Shown here one piece after another: positions 31,036-48,821 of a DNA stretch of 64,000 nucleotides. Under the pieces are notes generated by a model that was not told the origin of the DNA, searched no databases, and saw only the letters and a list, made by a program, of their open reading frames with translations. Where the stretch lies: the IMG/VR virus record IMGVR_UViG_3300047322_001237, positions 62,001 to 126,000 of that record; one strand, given 5' to 3'. Positions within the stretch are counted from its first letter, which is position 1. The number at the start of each line of letters is the position of its first letter. Both the position numbers and the translations under genes were made by a program.

Positions 31036-31343
31036 CGAGCCCGGTGGATGATTCCCGTCGATGTCGGTTGCGTGTTGCTACGCGTCCCGTTGCCGATCTG
31101 TTTGACTTCGGCCGATCCAGTGTTTTCCGGCGCGGGCAGTTCAGACGGCGTGCCCGGAGGCGTCATGAACGGCGAGCGGCCGTTGCCGCCGATCGCACGG
31201 ATGTACTCGACCTCCACCTTCGCCGTCTCGACCGCCACTGCGGCGACCTGTGCAACTGCGCGAGCCCGATCCACTTCCATCGGTCTGTCCCGGTCACGCA
31301 GGGCGCTAAGCGTATTCATCAGGTGTTCACGCAAATCGTTCAT
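31032..31343 (-). CDS. prophage-type hypothetical protein accompanying HNH
   Basis: MNDLREHL..L..LRD...RA.AVAQVA..AVETAKVEV pattern. Confidence 0.6.
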   Translation of the reverse strand: MNDLREHLMNTLSALRDRDRPMEVDRARAVAQVAAVAVETAKVEVEYIRAIGGNGRSPFMTPPGTPSELPAPENTGSAEVKQIGNGTRSNTQPTSTGIIHRAR

Positions 31344-32073
31344 GTGGCTCACGGTCTTTCTCCTTTGCTTCACGGACAATACGGTTCAACTGGCGCGTGA
31401 TCGCGCCCTTGAGCTGTGTCAGCTTCGCTAGCTCCGGCGATTTGTTGATTGGGTGATTGCGGTACGCGCGTTCCCGACGGCTCACCAGTTCGAGGATGTC
31501 GATGGTGATCTCGGATGCGACGTTGGTCTTCTTCCCGGGAAGAAAGCAGACCATGTGGCCCTTGGGGACAGGACCGTGGACTGATTCCCAGACGAGGCGA
31601 TGAACACCGACCCATCTGCGTTGAAACTGGACAGCAGGATCGTCGGTCACCTTCCGCTCGAGATAACCCTCCTTAGACAAGCGCTCCGTGCCGATGGGCA
31701 CCCAGTTCTTGTGCGCGGCGCCGGTGCGTTCGCCTTTCTTGAATTGCGTGCGGCGACAATTGGGATGGGTTCCCGTACTGCCTTTGACGCCGTCATTCCA
31801 CGCTTTCTGTCCTTTCTTGAACTGGTTGGCCTTGAGTGCGGGATGGACCTGACCACGCGCGATGCGCAGCTGGCGATCCGCCTCCCAGTACTCGTCGGTC
31901 TTCCTGACGCCTAACGCTGCGGCGTGCTGATACAGCGGACCGACGCCGACCCCCATCTCGTCTGCCATCTCCTTGGTGGATCGATGCGGGTACTCCCTTC
32001 GGATCTTCTCCTTTTCCTCCTCAGTCCACATGTGACGGACTTTTACGCGAGACGTAGACTTTCGTTTTGGCAC
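31327..32073 (-). CDS. HNH endonuclease-family protein
   Basis: N-terminal Myb/HTH-like WTEEEKE..RREYP, repeated QFKKG..WN units, then GYLERK...VHRLVWE..HGPVP. Confidence 0.75.
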   Translation of the reverse strand: MPKRKSTSRVKVRHMWTEEEKEKIRREYPHRSTKEMADEMGVGVGPLYQHAAALGVRKTDEYWEADRQLRIARGQVHPALKANQFKKGQKAWNDGVKGSTGTHPNCRRTQFKKGERTGAAHKNWVPIGTERLSKEGYLERKVTDDPAVQFQRRWVGVHRLVWESVHGPVPKGHMVCFLPGKKTNVASEITIDILELVSRRERAYRNHPINKSPELAKLTQLKGAITRQLNRIVREAKEKDREPHERFA

Positions 32074-32458
32074 TGTCTGCCTCCTCTTCGAATCGAGTCC
32101 ACACGGGGATGCTGAACTCACCAGCCAGCAAGATCGCGTCACCTGTCACGAAGTCGTGACCCTGTATCGTTTTCGAGAAGTCGTATCCTCCACAGGCTCG
32201 GATCTCCGACACTTCCGGATGCATGGCTTCAACGAGGGAGATCACGTAGTCAAAGTCCCGAGCGGAGAATTCCGCCCAGCGCTTGTTTTCGGCTCGAGGT
32301 TCGGACGGCTCGCCAAACATGTCATAGGTCATGAAGCCGGCACCGCGGCTCCTGAGCACACCGGCACCAAGTTCGTGGTGCAGCTCTTCTGCGAGTTTGT
32401 TGCTGACCGTCGCGACCCGAGCACGAATCTCACCGAACGTGCTAAATAGTTTTGGCAT
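32021..32458 (-). CDS. hypothetical protein
   Basis: probable start MPKLFST. Confidence 0.5.
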   Translation of the reverse strand: MPKLFSTFGEIRARVATVSNKLAEELHHELGAGVLRSRGAGFMTYDMFGEPSEPRAENKRWAEFSARDFDYVISLVEAMHPEVSEIRACGGYDFSKTIQGHDFVTGDAILLAGEFSIPVWTRFEEEADSAKTKVYVSRKSPSHVD

Positions 32459-36866: not shown

Positions 36867-36984
36867 TGCGAATATCTCTCATCAATTCTTGATTAAATTG
36901 TTGAGTCTCGAACCACTTCTCGAAGCCATCATCCGTGAAGTGTCCAGCCTCGTCGTAATATCGTTCCATTTTCGTCCCTTGATG

Positions 36985-37099
36985 TCATAAGGGGAGAGCC
37001 GATGGCCCTCCCTCATTAACCAGATTCCGGTTCGAAGCAGCCTCCTTTCTCTCTCGAACCGTGGAACAAATCAGAGAACTTCGGGACGTTGCACCGTCC
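36985..37099 (-). ncRNA. candidate small RNA with SD-like loop
   Basis: TATG start site, GGACG-gtgcaa-CGTCC hairpin, TTCC-CGGTTCGA/TCGAACCG-GAA stem presenting GAGAGAAAGGAGG, terminal hairpin+TTATGAC. Confidence 0.4.
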
Positions 37100-37141
37100 A
37101 TACAAAGAGGCTGGTCAATAAGTTTTACCTGGACAATCCTG

Positions 37142-37471
37142 TTACTGCTCGCGCCTGAAGCCTTTCGGCGTGATCCAGTCGTAGCGATCAGGCTCGTCGT
37201 TCAACGGCTCGACGTCGAGAAACTTGCAGGGGTCGGCCGCATCCGCCCAGTGGAAGACCGGAATCCACTCGTCCGTCTCACGGATGTAGCGCCACTTCGT
37301 CTGCGCGAAGCCCGGCACCGACAGCAGCTCGTTGTCCGTCAAATGGGAGTTCTGCACGCAGCTCATCTTCGCGTTCAGCTGGACCATCAGGGCCGGAGAG
37401 TCACGCAAGTACAACTCGCGCGTGATCTGTTCCAGCGTGTAGACCTCGCCGCCGCGGGGATAGTTACGCAT
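37142..37471 (-). CDS. hypothetical protein
   Basis: probable start MRNYPRGG behind AGGAG. Confidence 0.6.
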   Translation of the reverse strand: MRNYPRGGEVYTLEQITRELYLRDSPALMVQLNAKMSCVQNSHLTDNELLSVPGFAQTKWRYIRETDEWIPVFHWADAADPCKFLDVEPLNDEPDRYDWITPKGFRREQ

Positions 37472-37491
37472 GATCTCTGCTCCTTTTACGC

Positions 37492-37522
37492 AAATAAAAA
37501 AGCCGACCCACGAAGGGCCGGC
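37492..37522 (-). terminator. intrinsic terminator
   Basis: gccggccc-ttcg-tgggtcggc + TTTTTTATTT. Confidence 0.75.
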
Positions 37523-37542
37523 ATCAAGAGAGGGAGGAAGTA

Positions 37543-38477: not shown

Positions 38478-39551
38478 TTACAGTTCGACGGCCTTCGAAA
38501 CGTCAATGCCAAAATCGCCGATCTTGCCGACGAGCTGGTTCAACTCCTCGTGCGTGAAGTCCACGCCCTTGATGTTGTACGACGCCTGTACCAGACTCTT
38601 CTTCGCAGGCGCGCCAACAGCGAAGCCACTGGCCGTGAGTTCGGAGTACAGCTCTTTGACCTCACCGAGCGTGAAGTCCACGCCGCGAATCTTCATCGAG
38701 ACTTCGAACAGCGGTTGATTAGCCAGCACTGCGGGCGGTGCGCTCGATACCAGGTCTGCTTTCACTTCTTCTTCCTTGTTTTCGTTGTTGGATTGCACTT
38801 CAGATTCGTTCACTGCCGCCTTCTGCCAGCGCGCGGGCATCGGCAGGTCATTGAGTCGGTAAACGAAGTAGGGACGCTTCGGCAATTGCTCGACTGCACG
38901 ACGGGTCACGTAACCCGCCTTGAAGAAGATCGACAGCTTCGGCGAGATGCTGACCGGGTTGTAGTCGTAGTCCGCAAGGAACACAGCCAGGTCGGCTGCG
39001 GAATACTCACCGAAATCCGCCATCAACTTCCAGATGGCGACGTCGAGCGTATCGCCAGGCAGGATCTCGCCCAACTTCTGCGGCACGGGTTGCTGTTCTT
39101 CCACCGCCACCGGCGTGATGACCTCGACTGCCGGTTCTTCAAACACCTCCGGCATGGCCGGCTGTTCCATCGGTTCGTCCTTCTCGTTTGCGGGGATGGG
39201 CATGGGGATATGCGCCTTCAGTCGGTACACAGTGCGGGGACCCTCGCCGCGACGATCGTAGATGCGGTTGCTTCGTACGAGCGAGGCGGTGCGGTTTTCC
39301 ACTTGCGCCGGATCGAAACCGAAGTCCTTGATTGCCACAACGATCTCCTTCGCGCCACGCCACTTGCGATCGGACATCAACTTCCAAATTGCTACGTCAA
39401 TACCTTCTTCAACCAGGATGCGATTGATCGACACGCGCTTGCGCACGGTGACGGTCGGTTGTTGCAACTTGCTGCCCTTTTGACCATTGGCAAAGAACAG
39501 GTCGCGGAGGTCAGTCAGCGAATTGCCAGCGGTACCCAGTGCATTCAACAT
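38478..39551 (-). CDS. early protein with two winged-helix-like repeats and two C-terminal short repeats
   Basis: DVAIWKLM...VYRL twice; I(R/K)GVDFT twice. Confidence 0.7.
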   Translation of the reverse strand: MLNALGTAGNSLTDLRDLFFANGQKGSKLQQPTVTVRKRVSINRILVEEGIDVAIWKLMSDRKWRGAKEIVVAIKDFGFDPAQVENRTASLVRSNRIYDRRGEGPRTVYRLKAHIPMPIPANEKDEPMEQPAMPEVFEEPAVEVITPVAVEEQQPVPQKLGEILPGDTLDVAIWKLMADFGEYSAADLAVFLADYDYNPVSISPKLSIFFKAGYVTRRAVEQLPKRPYFVYRLNDLPMPARWQKAAVNESEVQSNNENKEEEVKADLVSSAPPAVLANQPLFEVSMKIRGVDFTLGEVKELYSELTASGFAVGAPAKKSLVQASYNIKGVDFTHEELNQLVGKIGDFGIDVSKAVEL

Positions 39552-39609
39552 GTAAAACTCCAGCCTTGTTTAAGTGTTATTAAGAGCATCTGGATTGATG
39601 CTCGTACAC

Positions 39610-39635
39610 GTCATATAGGTCTCAGATATTTTTCG
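39610..39635 (-). promoter_or_regulatory. phiKZ-type early promoter
   Basis: minus strand AAAAATATCTGAGACCTATATGAC. Confidence 0.6.
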
Positions 39636-39694
39636 TTCCGTTTTAACGGGACGAGCGAAGGCGGCATAAGGGGAGGCACGAAGCCTCCCGATTA

Positions 39695-40189
39695 TTACCA
39701 TGCGAGATATGAGGGACGCCCCTTCTCGTCATCGTCGAAAGCGAATTGAAGCTTTTTCGGAGCGAGCCAGGCAACGAGATCGATCTGTTCTTGCTTGATA
39801 ATGCCGCCCGTAATCGTGGATTGTGTTTTCCACTCGGTTAGCAGTTTGTTGTGCTCATTGTCGTTCTTGACCCAGTCGTCCTGAGCCAGGATTACGATTG
39901 TGTAAAGGAAGAGTTCGAGCTTCTCAATCTCTCCGCGCGGAGGGATTCGATTTTCGGGAACGGTGAGTTCAATGACATTGCCGCGCGCGCTGTAGCGCGT
40001 CGTGCCGTGCGTCTTTTCCATCATGGAGGCGAAGGCTTGACCAATCGCCTCTTGCTTGTCTGTCGTGGCGTAAAGCCACTCATTTGATTCAGTTTCATCC
40101 CAGCGGACAATCTTACCGGTTCGCTTAAAGCCCGGCATTAACTCGCGCTGATTATAGCCGGATCCATGGTAAAGCAACTTGGTGGTCAT
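39695..40189 (-). CDS. ADP-ribosyltransferase-fold candidate (Arr/DUF952-like H-Y-E)
   Basis: LLYHGS..L.PG ... WLYATTDKQEAI ... EW pattern; probable start MTTKLL. Confidence 0.45.
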   Translation of the reverse strand: MTTKLLYHGSGYNQRELMPGFKRTGKIVRWDETESNEWLYATTDKQEAIGQAFASMMEKTHGTTRYSARGNVIELTVPENRIPPRGEIEKLELFLYTIVILAQDDWVKNDNEHNKLLTEWKTQSTITGGIIKQEQIDLVAWLAPKKLQFAFDDDEKGRPSYLAW

Positions 40190-40205
40190 GTTGTATTCGC
40201 GCAAA

Positions 40206-40246
40206 AGGGCATACAGGACAGGGGCGGGGTCCCCTGTCCCTTTTTT
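40206..40246. terminator. hairpin closing the ncRNA locus
   Basis: ggacagggg-cggggt-cccctgtcc; followed by TTTTTT on plus and TGTATGCCCTTTT on minus. Confidence 0.75.
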
Positions 40247-41119
40247 GTACGCCTGAAGACAGTGGAGTCAGATCACTTGGGTTTTGGTATGTCCGTTACG
40301 CACGCGCCCGGCGTCGACTGAGGTCAGAAAACCAGCGATACTGCGATCCGTCTTGCCTTCCAGTTGCTTCCTCGTGAGAAGAAACACTAAGCGGGCAAGA
40401 CCGGAGACTGAAGCTAAAGAACAATAACGGCAGTGCGCCAGAGTTCTTGATGCGGCGATTGTTGCTAATACAGCAATGGATTAGTGCGCTTCCCATAGAA
40501 GACTGGCGTGAAGCAGATCCGTCTATTTCGCGGGGAGACAACCGCTCTAATAGAGTTACCCTGGTTCCAGCGTCTCGTAGACGCTGACTCTTACGAAGGT
40601 GTGCAACCCATCGCACAGAACGCCAAGACTTCTACAGGCTGCGCACTGAGAGCATGGCTCGATCAGCTGCATGGGCGCACCGCACGGCGCCACACGCACA
40701 AGGCACAACTTCCCGGGCTACACCCAGGCTTACCGATACAGGAGTGAAGTGGGCTCCTGACAGTCCGCTTTCGCAAGCGTTTCCGTAACCGGTGTTTGAT
40801 TCGGTGAACTGTGATCCTGAGCAACTAAAACAGCCAGTGAACAAATGGGATTCCCGTCCCTATAGCGCATCATTTCGCTGTCTCACGACAGTGCACGTAG
40901 CGTCTCACGACGAGTACGGCTGAATGCGCAGATCACTAACAACTACCCGGTGCTTTAGCGGGGCACTGGTGCTACTCAGGATTTCGCAGGCGTTTCACCT
41001 GGACATGGTTCCGGCCATCAGCGTTGCGCCTATGCCTTCTCCGTGCTGCGGACTTGCACCGCTCATCAGACAGTATCTAAGACCATCGATCTACAAGACA
41101 GAGCGATCTGTCTCGTCGC
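40215..41119 (-). ncRNA. candidate large (about 900 nt) structured non-coding RNA
   Basis: No credible ORF. TATG start at 41122-41119; 5'/3' closing helix 41102-41114 with 40265-40277; nested helices with G-U pairs; GUGA, GUGA, GCGA tetraloop hairpins; T-loop-like loops; 3' hairpin. Confidence 0.75.
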
Positions 41120-41132
41120 ATACGATAGGGGT

Positions 41133-41675
41133 TCAGGCATTTTTTACTGCGTCCGTCCTATTGCTATCAGGAAGCGCAGCGGCGACGCCGTGCTGCTTGC
41201 GCCACAGTTCGAATTCGTGTTCCTCACCGAGATGCTTGATGAACTCGCCGGCGTCGGAGAGCTCGGCAACTTGTCGCTTGATGCGCTGGTTCTGCTGAGA
41301 CAGACCAACGTTGGCGACTTCAAGCATCTCGCAGATGTCACGCCACTCCGCATCCGGCTTGACGTCCGGGAAGATCAGTCGCGGCATGAACGACAAATCT
41401 ATCGCGCACTCGCCGAACTTGACACTGATTGTCCAGCGCTCGCGTCCATGATGCGTTACATCAGGCTCGCCGACCGTCCTGATCGCGAAGGTCGTGGTGA
41501 TCTCCGACACAACCTCAGCGGGCAGGCCTGGCTTCTCGGTCCATGGGATGCAGATAAGATCGAAGTCTCGAGCAAGACTTCCGTGGATTGCCATCGCGTA
41601 ACCATGCTTGCGGGCGATTTCCGCCAACTGCGGATAAAGCGCGCAGTAGACGGGAGCGTAGTTAGCATCCTTCAT
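41133..41675 (-). CDS. nucleotidyltransferase-like protein (pol-beta-type motif)
   Basis: AIHGSLARDFDLICIPW (hGS..DxD) and a later IDLS acidic strand. Confidence 0.45.
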   Translation of the reverse strand: MKDANYAPVYCALYPQLAEIARKHGYAMAIHGSLARDFDLICIPWTEKPGLPAEVVSEITTTFAIRTVGEPDVTHHGRERWTISVKFGECAIDLSFMPRLIFPDVKPDAEWRDICEMLEVANVGLSQQNQRIKRQVAELSDAGEFIKHLGEEHEFELWRKQHGVAAALPDSNRTDAVKNA

Positions 41676-42318
41676 TGCCCTTCTCCTTTTCCGGATAAGC
41701 GATGTTGAAGACCGCGGACAGCGCGCGGTCGAGCTGCTCCCGCTTCTCGGCTGTCATCACGATAGGCGTGCCGTCCGGCCGGAAACAGTAGTGACCGCCT
41801 TCGCACCCGATCGCGCTGCAGCCGCCCGGCTTGCACGTATCCTTCTTCTCCACTTGCTTTTCGACAGGGGGCAAGCCGACTACCGCGCGCAGATCGTTGG
41901 CCAGCAGGTCGACCACCTTGCCATCTTCCAACACCACGCCCATGATCTCGTCATCCATGTCGGTCGTCGAATAAGCTTCCACGAAGGCCTTGATGCGTTC
42001 GATGGCTTGCGCAGGCTTTGCTTCTTCTGCCCGTGCGAGTCCCGAGCGAACGCCTGCGTCGAAGATCTCTTGCTCCGTAGGCTTCCGACCCTTCGCCACG
42101 TAGAAAGCGCCGCTGAAACCGCCGTACGTCCGCGGCGTCAGGAGCAACGGATTGGGCGCGACTTCTTCGGCGTGCTTTGCCGGCGTGGAGAAGAACACCG
42201 AGCCGACCGCATAGTCGGTCCAGTGCCCGAACCATTTGAGGATCGGACCGTATTCATCGAGCCCTGCAACCACTGCCGCCGGCACGTAGTCGCTCTTGTC
42301 TTGTGGTGTTGTTGTCAT
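41662..42318 (-). CDS. hypothetical protein with C-terminal Cys cluster
   Basis: 218 aa; CKPGGCSAIGCEGGHYC. Confidence 0.6.
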   Translation of the reverse strand: MTTTPQDKSDYVPAAVVAGLDEYGPILKWFGHWTDYAVGSVFFSTPAKHAEEVAPNPLLLTPRTYGGFSGAFYVAKGRKPTEQEIFDAGVRSGLARAEEAKPAQAIERIKAFVEAYSTTDMDDEIMGVVLEDGKVVDLLANDLRAVVGLPPVEKQVEKKDTCKPGGCSAIGCEGGHYCFRPDGTPIVMTAEKREQLDRALSAVFNIAYPEKEKGNEGC

Positions 42319-42345
42319 CTGCTTGTGTCGTTGATGAGGTGTTTG

Positions 42346-42666
42346 TTACTTCTGTACGTCGCGAGGCATCGGGACTTCCGAGCCTTGCTTCCAGCGAACG
42401 CCGCCGGCGGCTGCCATCACAGAACCCGAGATCGCGACGATCCCGGTGGAGAAGCTCATGCTGTCGAAGTGGTGAGAGCGGAGGGTGTCGTAGAGCGTGA
42501 GGCCGAGAAACTCCAGACCGCCCAGCATCACGAAGCCGTAGCCGATCAGACGGGCCGGATCGACGTCGCCGTTCCAGTTGGTGAAAATGTCACCCGCTGT
42601 CTTCTTGAGCAGCGCGCGAGCGTTAGCCAGGGTTACGAGGTTCTTGAGTGTTTGCCACATGGTCAT
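42346..42666 (-). CDS. two-TM membrane protein (holin-like)
   Basis: LIGYGFVMLGGLEFLGLTLY and FSTGIVAISGSVMAAAGGV helices. Confidence 0.5.
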   Translation of the reverse strand: MTMWQTLKNLVTLANARALLKKTAGDIFTNWNGDVDPARLIGYGFVMLGGLEFLGLTLYDTLRSHHFDSMSFSTGIVAISGSVMAAAGGVRWKQGSEVPMPRDVQK

Positions 42667-42708
42667 TCTCCGAGGGGGTATCCAAAGGATTCGTCGACGG
42701 GCATGACC

Positions 42709-42742
42709 AAAAAAAAAACAGTTCACGCGAAGCGAACTGTTT
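42709..42742 (-). terminator. intrinsic terminator
   Basis: aacagttc-gcttcgcgt-gaactgtt + T10. Confidence 0.8.
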
Positions 42743-47751: not shown

Positions 47752-48795
47752 GTGGTAACGAGTAGGCTGCAGCGCAATGTGGATCAGGGCTTGCGTGAGC
47801 GCGCGCATATTTTCTTCGACACCAAGGGGCGGGTTCAGCGGCACAGCGCACAGGAGGAGAACGAGCTCGTCGGGCAGTTCCTCGAGCTGTTCGAACTGGC
47901 CGAGCGACTGCGCAAGCACGTAGGAGATGTGCTCACCCTGCGTGAGAATCCCCACAGCGGCATTCGATTTGTCCCTTCTTCCAAGCTGGCGCTTCTCGTG
48001 CGTAGCTGGCTGAACATCAACGTCCATCTCGCACACCAGCTCTTCCCGCAGCACCGGTTTCATCCGCTTATCGAGATATTCATGCGACGTGTCCCGGTCT
48101 TTCACGAATATCGCTTTTTCATTTTTACGCCGGGTTCCGTTCCCAATGAGATTCTCGATCAGATCGTATCCAAGGTGAATTTCAGTTTGGTCGAGATTCG
48201 GAAAGAATTGGCGAGCCAAGTGGTCAAGAAGGCAGCGGGCGAGTTTATTCGGCCAGTGAATAAGAACCACAAGAGCCTTACGGATTATGTCGATGCGCTC
48301 GTAGAGCAGCATGGTTCAATGCAGGCGGTGCGACTTGACCTTGGATATACGGAGCGAATCACGTACTCGTCACGGGCCGCGCGCAAAATCTCTTTCGAGG
48401 AGACAAGCGACCACCGAAAAAAACTTCTGATTCACATGCGGCGGTGGTTTCCGGAGAATATGCTTGGCTATTCGTGGAAACTGGAACACGGCCTACAAAG
48501 TTCTTACCGCTATCACTGGCTCTTTTTCTTTCCGGGCAACACGCTGCGCGGCGACATGGAAATTGGGAAACTGATCGGTGAGCAGTGGTCGAAGAGTGTG
48601 ACGGACGGGAAGGGCGCGTACTTCAACTGGAATGATTCGGCAGGCAGTGGAATCAAACGTCCGGGTACGGGAAAGATCGCATCCTCGACGCCATTGAAGA
48701 ATCCGATTCAGTACATGACGAAACTGGACCGGTATATCAAACTCGGCGTGCCGGCCGGCGGTCGGACGTTTGATAAAGGGAATATGCCAAAATAA
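47752..48795 (+). CDS. YagK/YfjJ (inovirus Gp2)-family HUH-like protein
   Basis: AVRLDLGY, YSWKLEHG, YHWLFFFPG, GAYFNWN, YMTKLD..IKL motifs characteristic of this family. Confidence 0.75.
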   Translation: MVTSRLQRNVDQGLRERAHIFFDTKGRVQRHSAQEENELVGQFLELFELAERLRKHVGDVLTLRENPHSGIRFVPSSKLALLVRSWLNINVHLAHQLFPQHRFHPLIEIFMRRVPVFHEYRFFIFTPGSVPNEILDQIVSKVNFSLVEIRKELASQVVKKAAGEFIRPVNKNHKSLTDYVDALVEQHGSMQAVRLDLGYTERITYSSRAARKISFEETSDHRKKLLIHMRRWFPENMLGYSWKLEHGLQSSYRYHWLFFFPGNTLRGDMEIGKLIGEQWSKSVTDGKGAYFNWNDSAGSGIKRPGTGKIASSTPLKNPIQYMTKLDRYIKLGVPAGGRTFDKGNMPK

Positions 48796-48821
48796 AGATT
48801 GGATTGCGGCGTCTACACGGC

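Follow-up and report, generated by a model that had tools for sequence, protein, structure and literature searches.

The closest described counterparts of the RNA reported here are GOLLD and ROOL, which are likewise large, highly structured and phage-borne (PMC5737381; 10.1101/2024.12.08.627333). Structures of these large phage RNAs have been solved, and what they lack is a known function and a known protein partner. To our knowledge, no conserved transferase gene has been reported as linked to RNAs of this type. As for the enzymes, Tpt1/KptA performs NAD-dependent ADP-ribosyl transfer on RNA and tRNA, and a phage precedent for a transferase working with RNA is provided by T4 ModB, an ADP-ribosyltransferase that attaches NAD-capped RNAs to host proteins, a reaction termed RNAylation (PMC10468400).

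The locus compared here with these systems was found in a 279-kb soil phage, in which an enzyme gene stands on each side of a large folded RNA gene. The window, i.e., the whole stretch of DNA analyzed, comprises 64,000 nucleotides, and its relevant features are listed below, where related contigs and genome records are given by our working labels (L015, G001 and the like).

38478..39551, minus strand: gene of a 357-aa protein directly downstream of gene B (phrog_2030, E 9.5e-4)
39695-40204 from TTG, or 39695-40189 from ATG, minus strand: gene B, 164-169 aa, ADP-ribosyltransferase-like
40205-41132, minus strand: non-coding stretch between genes A and B, about 930 nt
40205-40400, minus strand: 3′ extension of the RNA, present only in the window's clade and L015/L016
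40216-40240, minus strand: terminal G+C-rich hairpin, separated by 26 nt from the gene B ATG at 40189
~40401-40480, minus strand: variable hairpin of the RNA
~40440 to 41132, minus strand: RNA core
41046..41064, minus strand: T-arm-like hairpin (7-nt loop), which is the best-conserved motif of the RNA and the anchor of our searches
41133-41149, minus strand: conserved 17-nt stretch at the 5′ edge of the RNA, including the gene A TGA stop (41133-41135)
41133-41675, minus strand: gene A, 180 aa, nucleotidyltransferase-like
41662..42318, minus strand: 218-aa gene located 5′ of gene A
42346..42726, minus strand: 126-aa gene, a marker of the ancestral backbone (tblastn, 45-59% identity, and ORF maps)

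Gene A, the RNA and gene B thus share the minus strand, as stated in the initial annotation, which had also placed the stop codon of gene A in the outer segment of the RNA and the start of gene B 26 nt past the terminal hairpin. Both placements were borne out, the former by the TGA lying inside the 17-nt stretch at the 5′ edge, and the latter when gene B is read from the ATG at 40189, which is its probable start and the one that homologues use.

The stretch between the two enzyme genes is a real structured non-coding RNA of an undescribed family. The 928-nt intergenic sequence folded well below its shuffled controls (z = -5.0), and compensatory changes were found in 46 of 117 pairs in an alignment of nine RNA sequences. 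When the 3′ half of the core was modelled, changes on both sides were seen at 29 of its 59 pairs, versus 12.9 in shuffles, and the stem of the T-arm-like hairpin covaries through CGG/CCG, GGG/CCC, GAG/CUC and CCG/CGG. Substitutions were distributed over the three codon positions as 13:10:11 in the RNA stretch, i.e., without bias, compared with 7:11:47 in gene B, while nucleotide conservation amounted to 89-94% in the RNA stretch against 77-87% in the flanking genes. Two ORFs of 106 and 70 aa in this region were rejected as coding sequences, as they exhibited no third-position bias and contained indels that are not multiples of three. The RNA is a single-copy element of the genome and measures about 600-950 nt across lineages, with abundant GNRA-type loops and long-range helices. 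The 17-nt stretch at its 5′ edge is conserved even in relatives in which another ORF terminates at this point. The terminal hairpin is conserved in L010, L013, L008, L015 and L016, and it forms a canonical intrinsic terminator on the plus strand only, the T-run on the RNA strand being weak and displaced. Exact contigs of the RNA core, and nothing else from 39000-42400, were present in two metatranscriptomes from two studies, where such RNA-library contigs are neither proof of transcription nor a source of transcript ends.

The likeness to GOLLD and ROOL lies in size and structure and extends to the position of the RNA directly behind tRNA genes in three lineages (L026, L029/L030 and L031). Unlike them, the RNA reported here is carried by jumbo phages of soil Pseudomonadota and is not recognized by their covariance models. 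A scan of the whole window with Rfam 15 gave no match to it at the gathering threshold, and nine homologues gave no match except the neighbouring tRNAs, at cut-offs of E up to 1 (window region, L026, L030 and L031) or up to 10 (L004, L009, L016, L023 and L024). GOLLD, ROOL, OLE, HEARO, raiA, RNase P, tmRNA and the group I/II introns were all among the Rfam 15 models that failed to match. Several stretches of the RNA, which we took to resemble hammerheads (CUGAUGAG) and RNase P (AAGUCC and GGUGAAA), were dismissed since the corresponding Rfam models match on neither strand. A chromosomal host RNA was likewise dismissed, as a search of 150 further genomes sampled from the host family did not find the sequence. 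No homologue was obtained by blastn from 50,697 deposited phage genomes, nor did exact 19-20-mers find anything in IMG/VR, in which homologues were reached only via a degenerate 29-nt motif. One or two conserved motifs underlie these RNA searches. A model of the 3′ half of the core (R1) missed a true diverged homologue in L026 that was recovered by nhmmer and a further model (R2). Absences called by R1 alone are soft because of this miss, and both presence and absence of the RNA are therefore under-sampled.

The downstream protein, encoded by gene B, belongs to phrog_13483 (E 2e-40) and carries the motifs YHGS (residues 12-15), WLYAT (43-47) and TEWKT (123-127), of which Y12, H13, S15, Y45 and E124 are invariant in 55 aligned relatives. 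The H-Y-E residues H13, Y45 and E124 fall in the predicted strands 10-15, 44-47 and 124-127, so that the His is on strand 1 (xHG[ST]), the Tyr on the following strand, and the Glu where a later strand begins. The structure predicted for gene B (pLDDT 90.3, pTM 0.83) is a single-domain ADP-ribosyltransferase fold with the H-Y-E pattern. In a fold search of 48,161 representative chains, all 16 that scored Z >= 5 were ADP-ribosyltransferases, and the best match was the NAD lobe of Tpt1/KptA (Z 8.5-8.8, rmsd 1.7-2.3 Å, 80-81 residues; closest Tpt1 superposition, Z 8.8 and 1.7 Å over 81 residues), with up to 21% identity to this NAD+-binding C-terminal lobe. The resemblance stops there: only residues 88-186 of the Tpt1/KptA chain are aligned, gene B has no counterpart of the N-terminal RNA-binding lobe, and none of its invariant residues is an Arg able to form the Arg-His-Arg-Arg tetrad of Tpt1. 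The pattern of Tpt1 is H-H-h, versus H-Y-E in gene B, and PF01885 (Tpt1/KptA) matched neither gene B nor anything else in this genome. With the second lobe, the tetrad and the PF01885 match all missing, true membership in Tpt1/KptA was rejected.

The size and fold of gene B also resemble those of Arr, DarT and the diphtheria-toxin/PARP clade, and superposition gave Z 6.5-7.4 over ~107 residues for Arr and Z 5.2-5.8 for DarT. In these Arr/DarT-type H-Y-[ED] transferases, the His, Tyr and acidic residue occupy strands equivalent to those predicted for gene B, but a sequence-profile match between them was not obtained, and DarT has the antitoxin partner DarG, whereas nothing of that sort stands beside gene B. 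A ModB-type RNAylating transferase was rejected because the invariant residues are H-Y-E and do not give the R-S-E pattern. ModB itself falls in the R-S-E clade, and its substrates are many NAD-capped RNAs, not a single dedicated RNA that is genetically linked to it. A Pfam search of the gene A and gene B proteins and their family members gave nothing significant, and profile searches of PDB sequences with the two proteins gave noise only. In 2 of the 55 members of the gene B family, ART-PolyVal, which is found in phage polyvalent proteins, was matched below threshold.

The upstream protein, encoded by gene A, belongs to phrog_35913 (E 7e-47), and its residues 29-41 read AIHGSLARDFDLI. H31, G32, D37, D39 and D93 are invariant in 48 aligned relatives, and H31-G32-S33, D37-x-D39 and D93 lie at the ends of the predicted strands 26-31, 39-44 and 90-96, which gives hG[GS], DxD on the next strand and a third carboxylate on a later strand, as in nucleotidyltransferases of the Pol-beta superfamily. 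The spacer from GS to DxD consists of just 3 residues, while 9-13 are usual in this superfamily. The predicted structure (pLDDT 82.9) retrieved exclusively Pol X enzymes (Pol mu and Pol beta) or Cid1 among the top 50 Foldseek matches, and its palm was superposed on that of Pol mu with Z 8.6 over 96 of 99 residues. An exhaustive fold search with residues 1-99 gave best matches that were all of the Pol-beta fold at a middling Z of 6-7.4, headed by Cid1 (Z 7.4), and the neighbours included the 3′-end tailing enzymes Cid1, TUT7, GLD-2 and Trf4, the CCA-adding enzyme, and MenT1. Catalytic palms of MNT antitoxins, MenT toxins and terminal uridylyl, adenylyl and CCA transferases are thus superposable on residues 1-99 (Z 6-8.6). 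Residues 1-100 are accordingly modelled as a minimal nucleotidyltransferase-like domain of the Pol-beta superfamily with an alpha/beta palm, which has the invariant GS, DxD and third Asp but, unlike its relatives, comprises only ~100 residues and lacks a substrate-recognition domain. Residues 109-161 are predicted to form a single long helix, a coiled-coil tail that is present only in the window's clade. No curated nucleotidyltransferase profile of Pfam (PF01909, PF18765 and the like) matched any of the 48 members, and the language-model neighbours in the ESM Atlas (0.79) are weak leads only. More than 500 relatives of gene A were found, mostly of ~105 aa and in varied contexts, beside which neither HEPN nor another conserved partner was found. 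The motifs quoted for both proteins in the initial annotation are therefore present, invariant across each protein family and not due to chance, and its assignment of the two folds agrees with structure prediction and fold searches, for gene A within the first 100 residues.

Comparison of the RNA-bearing lineages separates the two enzymes. Gene B is located downstream of the RNA and co-oriented with it at every RNA locus found, which represents eight lineages, at spacings from adjacent to within about 2.5 kb and down to 40% identity of the gene B protein. The two are adjacent in the window's clade and in L015/L016; the distance is 1.1 kb from the RNA end to the gene B start in L009/G003, 1.45 kb in L026, and about 2.4 kb in G002, G001 and L023, while in L029/L030 and L031 gene B begins about 1.8 kb past the 5′ motif of the RNA. 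Searching with RNA motifs alone yielded seven contigs, every one of which carries gene B. The gene B of L029-L031 is 40-42% identical to the protein in the window and is the sole gene in common with the window's neighbourhood. Depending on the lineage, none to four genes separate the RNA from gene B, consisting of weakly 2OG-Fe(II) oxygenase-like genes and DUF6817 or of unrelated ORFs, and in the genome of the window these have been lost altogether with the RNA-gene B pair being kept. Other neighbours likewise turn over while gene B stays by the RNA. Gene B was also found without a detectable RNA, namely in G004, which is 98% complete and has two gene B copies, and in L027 and L028, where the RNA was looked for within 10 kb on either side of the gene. 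The gene B tree does not resolve at its base. On the far side of gene B, the 357-aa protein weakly matches a phage transcriptional-regulator family (phrog_2030), and tblastn located a homologue of its gene after gene B in L010, L013 and L009/L020.

Gene A behaves differently. The order of gene A, RNA and gene B is kept in L010, L013, L014 and L008, the closest relatives of the window, and the five contigs of the window's clade that keep it count as a single observation because of their close kinship (91% identity in gene B). The RNA-bearing jumbo-phage records G001, G002 and G003, two of which are complete genomes, lack gene A; it is not alongside the RNA homologues of L015/L016, and in G008-G010 a distant relative of gene A is located 32-36 kb from the RNA. 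Conversely, gene A is widespread in phages without the RNA, such as G004 and G005. Homologues of the 218-aa gene are confined to the window's clade, apart from a remnant of 67 aa in L015/L016, and the backbone gene at 42346-42726, which abuts the RNA in other lineages, has homologues upstream of it in L024, L009, L004 and L023. Gene A and the 218-aa gene have jointly split the RNA from this ancestral upstream neighbour. Since a different ORF overlaps the 5′ edge in the same manner in L015/L016, the overlap with the stop codon reflects the RNA sequence and not gene A. Gene A is very probably a passenger that was inserted beside the RNA together with the 218-aa gene in the window's clade only, and its function most likely does not involve the RNA.

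The initial annotation had proposed that both enzymes and the RNA might constitute a three-part system, chance linkage being equally likely, to be checked by conservation of the order in related phages and contradicted by unrelated neighbours of the RNA homologues. Conservation of the order held within the window's clade and broke down in the other RNA-bearing lineages tested, in which gene A is absent or distant. RNA homologues with no adjacent nucleotidyltransferase gene were found, but none without a nearby ADP-ribosyltransferase-like gene; the data therefore fit a conserved pair of RNA and transferase, with no sandwich. A system in which all three act together, the RNA being tailed or capped by gene A and modified or used by gene B, could appeal to the shared order in five contigs, to the RNA 3′-end tailing enzymes among the structural neighbours of gene A, and to its stop codon overlapping the conserved 5′ edge. 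It is largely refuted by the comparative data and very improbable, given that those contigs amount to one observation, that three RNA-bearing records lack gene A and three more have it far off, that more than 500 relatives occur in varied contexts, and that another ORF makes the same overlap in L015/L016.

We put even chances on the RNA and gene B being functionally linked, with gene A outside that link. A sizeable possibility, though short of even, is that only inherited gene order is seen, in which case the RNA, gene A and gene B would be unrelated accessory elements of a not-yet-scrambled block, and gene B would modify a host protein or host nucleic acid unrelated to the RNA. As all RNA-bearing phages are related, inherited order can explain the linkage without function, and it is favoured by a partly conserved wider backbone (69-aa gene, 126-aa gene, RNA, gene B and 357-aa gene), by the RNA-less gene B of G004, L027 and L028, and by the two sub-threshold ART-PolyVal matches. 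A survey also found ADP-ribosyltransferases to be encoded by >40% of jumbo phages (PMC9503650). However, L029-L031 keep gene B ~1.8 kb behind the RNA on the same strand with no other neighbour of the window, and the genes between the two have been replaced several times, both of which speak against inherited order alone. Another conceivable relation is that the RNA acts in cis as a very long leader, or as a processed 5′ part, of the operon behind it and so controls the downstream genes, gene B among them, for instance via the hairpin 26 nt ahead of the gene B start. The RNA is always upstream of, and co-stranded with, the genes that follow, no sigma-70-like promoter was found between it and gene B, and in the window's clade the strong hairpin right before gene B is accompanied by no obvious gene B ribosome-binding site. 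Such a leader is nevertheless quite unlikely, since the first downstream gene differs in other lineages (oxygenase-like or unknown), in which the 3′ extension with its hairpin is missing as well; the hairpin would terminate sense transcription poorly, RNA libraries show core contigs only, and a core of 600-950 nt with such long-range covariation far exceeds known leaders in size.

A mobile self-splicing intron, or its remnant, might be suspected from the many GNRA-type loops and long-range helices, and from L008, where an I-TevI-like homing endonuclease of 251 aa with GIY-YIG, NUMOD3 and I-TevI DNA-binding domains is encoded between the RNA core and the 3′ extension. It is common, though, for free-standing endonuclease genes to settle between phage genes. 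No gene is interrupted by the RNA, as the flanking ORFs differ by lineage and are full length in comparison with RNA-lacking relatives; group I/II models remained unmatched even at E up to 10, and the sequencing runs examined contained no splice-like joints, the sole joints being DNA variants of the variable hairpin. We consider an intron very unlikely.

Functional linkage is the reading that we favour. Together, the RNA and gene B make up a two-part neighbourhood that is conserved in a single family of soil and rhizosphere jumbo phages, whose hosts are probably Burkholderiaceae, and the system may be two-part rather than three-part because only gene B stays near the RNA and gene A is a recent insertion. 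A related phage contig of 286 kb is contained in the assembly of Paraburkholderia sp. BCC1886. The RNA would be made as a stable stand-alone transcript, behind phage tRNA genes in three lineages, and gene B would use NAD+ to ADP-ribosylate something in its pathway. By analogy with Tpt1/KptA, whose substrates include tRNA, ADP-ribose might be transferred to a phosphate end or 2′-phosphate of the RNA or of a tRNA-like substrate, a specific reaction that we regard as rather doubtful. Equally tentative is a ribonucleoprotein-like system of jumbo phages, in which the ornate RNA of 600-950 nt, often made behind phage tRNAs, would be the specific substrate, guide or cofactor of the minimal Tpt1/Arr-like gene B, which might cap its phosphate end with ADP-ribose or join it covalently to a host protein.

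These results give a fold to each of two PHROG families catalogued with unknown function, where phrog_35913 is predicted to be a minimal nucleotidyltransferase and phrog_13483 a compact H-Y-E ADP-ribosyltransferase, and they illustrate that a tidy gene sandwich can be a recent insertion and not a system. An undescribed RNA of the GOLLD/ROOL size class is consistently trailed by one enzyme gene, and the nearest structural relatives of this enzyme use NAD+ on RNA, which turns the role of large RNAs into a question that can be tested at the bench. If true, the ribonucleoprotein-like reading would give one large orphan phage RNA both a protein partner and a chemistry.

All motif and layout details described in the initial annotation were present in the window, including the gene A stop within the conserved 5' edge of the RNA. 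The elements of the locus are as follows:

41133–41675, minus strand: gene A, nucleotidyltransferase-like, 180 aa, with AIHGSLARDFDLI at residues 29–41
40205–41132, minus strand: the RNA, large, structured and non-coding
40216–40240: G+C-rich terminal hairpin, ending 26 nt before the gene B ATG
39695–40204 (TTG start) or from the ATG at 40189, minus strand: gene B, ADP-ribosyltransferase-like (homologues use ATG)
38478–39551, minus strand: 357-aa protein after gene B, with two internal repeats in two copies each

The proposal that these two genes and the RNA form a three-part system was refuted by the comparative data. The same order in related phages was retained in the window's clade (contigs L010, L013, L014 and L008), near relatives with 91% identical gene B that therefore represent one observation, and did not hold in contigs L015/L016 or in virus genomes G001–G003 and G008–G010. 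In L015/L016 (gene B 75% identical), gene A is missing; the RNA is preceded instead by a 67-aa ORF, a remnant of the 218-aa gene, whose stop is the same conserved one within the RNA 5' edge. Since another ORF shares this stop, the overlap stems from the RNA rather than from gene A. No gene A occurs anywhere in the records of the Paraburkholderia phage (L009, L020, L022 and G003) or in the complete genomes G002 (285 kb) and G001 (324 kb), and its relative in G008–G010 (37–39% identical) lies 32–36 kb away from the RNA. The 559 matches to gene A have varied upstream partners, and neither RNA model detected anything in G004 and G005, which are nearly complete and carry gene A relatives. The direct upstream neighbour of the RNA in L024, L009, L004 and L023 is a homologue of the window's gene at 42346–42726, and in the window the 218-aa gene and gene A have been inserted between this gene and the RNA. 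Gene A is thus very probably a passenger, being absent or far from the RNA elsewhere, plentiful without the RNA and inserted here. Relatives of the 218-aa gene (41662–42318) are longer, at 260–320 aa (L010:100–999, L013:337–1119 and L008:4042–5004), and their extra C-terminal segment, which the window copy lacks, looks by eye like an Xre/HigA-type helix-turn-helix.

RNA homologues were collected via flanking proteins, with nhmmer, and with a degenerate motif of 29 nt built around a T-arm-like hairpin, both in its first form and in relaxed versions; one or two motifs underlie the RNA searches, many of the contigs are fragmentary, and the RNA-bearing lineages are interrelated. At all RNA loci found, gene B was located downstream on the same strand, arranged as follows:

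Window's clade and L015/L016: gene B adjacent to the RNA
L009: gene B start 1.1 kb after the RNA end
L026: gene B start 1.45 kb after the RNA end
G002, G001 and L023: gene B start ~2.4 kb after the RNA end
L029/L030 and L031: gene B start ~1.8 kb after the RNA's 5' motif
L024:1797–4194, L009:3878–5004 and the contig of P0129: one to three oxygenase-like paralogues and DUF6817 between the RNA and gene B

Seven contigs (G001, G002, G003, L023, L029, L030 and L031) were found by the RNA motifs alone, so that there is no ascertainment bias towards gene B. The interval contained nothing, one or three weak 2OG-Fe(II) oxygenase-like genes together with DUF6817, or unrelated small ORFs; the window's genome has no DUF6817, no such oxygenase-like genes and no Tpt1. 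A Tpt1 (PF01885) gene was observed ~5 kb upstream of gene B in L009. In L029–L031, whose gene B is 40–42% identical, gene B is the sole gene in common with the window's neighbourhood. No RNA was detectable in G004, which has two gene B copies, or in the 10 kb to each side of gene B in L027 and L028, and these relatives count against a strict dependence of gene B on the RNA. The gene B tree did not resolve at its base and is therefore silent on a single origin of the linkage.

The 928-nt region between gene A and gene B gave a folding z of −5.0 and matched no family in Rfam 15. RNAalifold predicted 117 pairs for nine RNA sequences, with compensatory double changes in 46 of them. For the 3' half of the RNA core, both-sided changes were found in 29 of 59 pairs as against 12.9 ± 2.4 in shuffled sets (0/500 as high), and fell to 2–7 pairs when the partners were slid; likewise, 93.5% of cells pair, as against 34–51% when slid. 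Substitutions by codon position were unbiased in the RNA region (13:10:11) as opposed to gene B (7:11:47), indels were not multiples of three, and close relatives shared 89–94% nucleotide identity in the RNA as against 77–87% in the flanking genes. The core spans ~580–690 nt in most lineages and ~940 nt in L026, and the 3' extension (~200 nt), which includes the terminal hairpin, occurs only in the window's clade and L015/L016. The RNA is present in one copy in its genome, and the same motif model did not find it in any of 150 further genomes sampled from the host family. It constitutes an undescribed family among the large, ornate RNAs of phages.

Metatranscriptomes from two studies (soil and plant) each contained one exact core contig (40566–40798 and 40493–40717), and nothing from the rest of 39000–42400. 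Being contigs, these matches place the core in RNA libraries but neither define the ends of a transcript nor demonstrate transcription itself. None of the joints observed resembled splicing; all were DNA variants of the variable hairpin at 40401–40480. An intron was rejected, as no gene is split by the element, intron models do not match it and splice joints are lacking.

The RNA 5' edge (41117–41149, minus strand) contains two short conserved stretches, AGTAAAAA-like and TAT.GTATGCG, which are kept in L004, L009, L016, L023 and L024. The ORF ending there is not always the same, and the stop codons of such ORFs, including the TGA of gene A, fall within the conserved stretch. The UGCG of this edge pairs with an invariant CGCA ~480 nt downstream, and the edge may be a phage promoter or the first helix of the RNA. 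The terminal hairpin scored as a canonical terminator for the opposite (plus) strand only; its T-run is clean on that strand, antisense to every local gene, and weak and displaced on the RNA's own strand. This hairpin (40216–40241) may be a stop for antisense transcription or a 3' stability element.

In three distant lineages (L026, L029/L030 and L031) the RNA lies 3' of phage tRNA genes, with tRNA-Ser gct / tRNA-Asn gtt directly 5' of it (L030:3545–3810, L029:6113–6379, L026:7076–7257 and L031:2394–2475). Only 4 nt separate the tRNA-Asn end from the conserved RNA region in L030, a spacing suggestive of joint transcription followed by processing; tRNA genes are absent from the window. A 251-aa I-TevI-like homing endonuclease with GIY-YIG, NUMOD3 and I-TevI DNA-binding domains is encoded at L008:6269–7024 (FCOG02000098, Caballeronia arationis), between the RNA core and the 3' extension at the spot of the window's variable hairpin (40401–40480), and is most plausibly a free-standing gene that has invaded a variable spacer. 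L008 also has a Tn5-type transposase directly 3' of gene B.

Neither protein matched Pfam, and their PHROGs (phrog_35913 for gene A and phrog_13483 for gene B) are both listed with unknown function. H31, G32, D37, D39 and D93 of gene A are invariant across 48 relatives, as are Y12, H13, S15, Y45 and E124 of gene B across 55, where YHGS, WLYAT and TEWKT start at residues 12, 43 and 123; the motifs are family signatures rather than chance. The AlphaFold2 model of gene A, built on the family alignment (pLDDT 82.9), has an alpha/beta domain (residues 1–100) and a single long helix (109–161); relatives are mostly ~105 aa, and the helix is found only in the window's clade. All of the top 50 Foldseek matches were Pol mu, Pol beta or Cid1, and a second-look aligner gave Z 8.6 over 96 of residues 1–99. 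An exhaustive comparison of these residues with 48,161 chains was led by Cid1, TdT, GLD-2, CapRel, TUT7, URT1, Pol beta, Trf4, Rel, a cGAS-like receptor, CCA-adding enzyme, poly(A) polymerase, CdnE and MenT1, all of the Pol-beta nucleotidyltransferase fold at middling Z values (6–7.4); the call depends on the uniformity of the matches and on the invariant GS, DxD and D. The nucleotidyltransferase fold first proposed from motifs was thereby borne out.

The ADP-ribosyltransferase fold and H-Y-E pattern proposed for gene B also stood. Its model (pLDDT 90.3, pTM 0.83) retrieved exclusively ADP-ribosyltransferases as leading Foldseek matches, and all 16 chains with Z of at least 5 among the same 48,161 belonged to this class (KptA, PltA, Scabin, TreX, Arr, heat-labile toxin, pertussis toxin, CARDS toxin, mouse Tpt1, DarT and a diphtheria-toxin homologue). 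Structurally, gene B aligns best with the NAD lobe of Tpt1/KptA (81 residues at rmsd 1.7 Å, Z 8.8), and sequence identity reaches 21% for an archaeal KptA. Gene B was nevertheless rejected as a Tpt1, since it lacks the RNA lobe and arginine tetrad and has no PF01885 match. On these predicted structures, genes A and B each represent a new, unannotated member of a known superfamily. The 357-aa protein weakly matches a phage transcriptional-regulator family, and its first repeat, judged from sequence, looks like a winged helix. Gene B is also followed by a homologue of this protein in L010, L013 and L009/L020, which makes it a candidate nucleic-acid-binding partner.

The source record (278,988 bp, of which the window is bases 62001–126000) has direct terminal repeats and is therefore a jumbo phage. 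The stretch was present in rhizosphere, root and soil metagenome runs, and the Caballeronia arationis and Paraburkholderia sp. BCC1886 assemblies include contigs that carry close relatives of the locus, pointing to a host in the Burkholderiaceae. The BCC1886 isolate assembly holds a related jumbo phage as a ~286-kb contig (L022 / G011:C11), a possible route to a host–phage pair that can be cultured; G003 is classed as a provirus by IMG/VR. Within the window, genes lie on the minus strand from ~28.5 kb to past the 57-kb point. This array includes a 271-aa protein (31327–32142, minus strand) with an HNH_3 endonuclease domain (E 1.2e-7), likely another homing endonuclease, and two stretches, 36867–37542 (676 nt) and 48313–48821 (509 nt), without a minus-strand ORF of at least 50 aa.

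We know of no earlier description, in the literature searched or elsewhere, of a dedicated RNA gene in linkage with a minimal ADP-ribosyltransferase. The comparison leaves two readings of the pair. In one, which we consider the less likely but still plausible, it is a slowly decaying remnant of inherited gene order; against this stands its survival despite the turnover of all other neighbours. We favour a functional link between the RNA and gene B, giving it an even chance, because of this same persistence, because the closest structural relatives of gene B are RNA-directed NAD enzymes, and because the RNA has a T-arm-like hairpin and adjoins tRNA genes. Under such a functional link, the chemistry that we would place first, though only as a tentative and rather improbable choice, is ADP-ribosylation by gene B of a phosphate end or 2'-phosphate of the RNA or a tRNA-like substrate. 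Alternatively, the RNA might be joined covalently to protein, by analogy with ModB RNAylation (PMC10468400), or might control the downstream operon.
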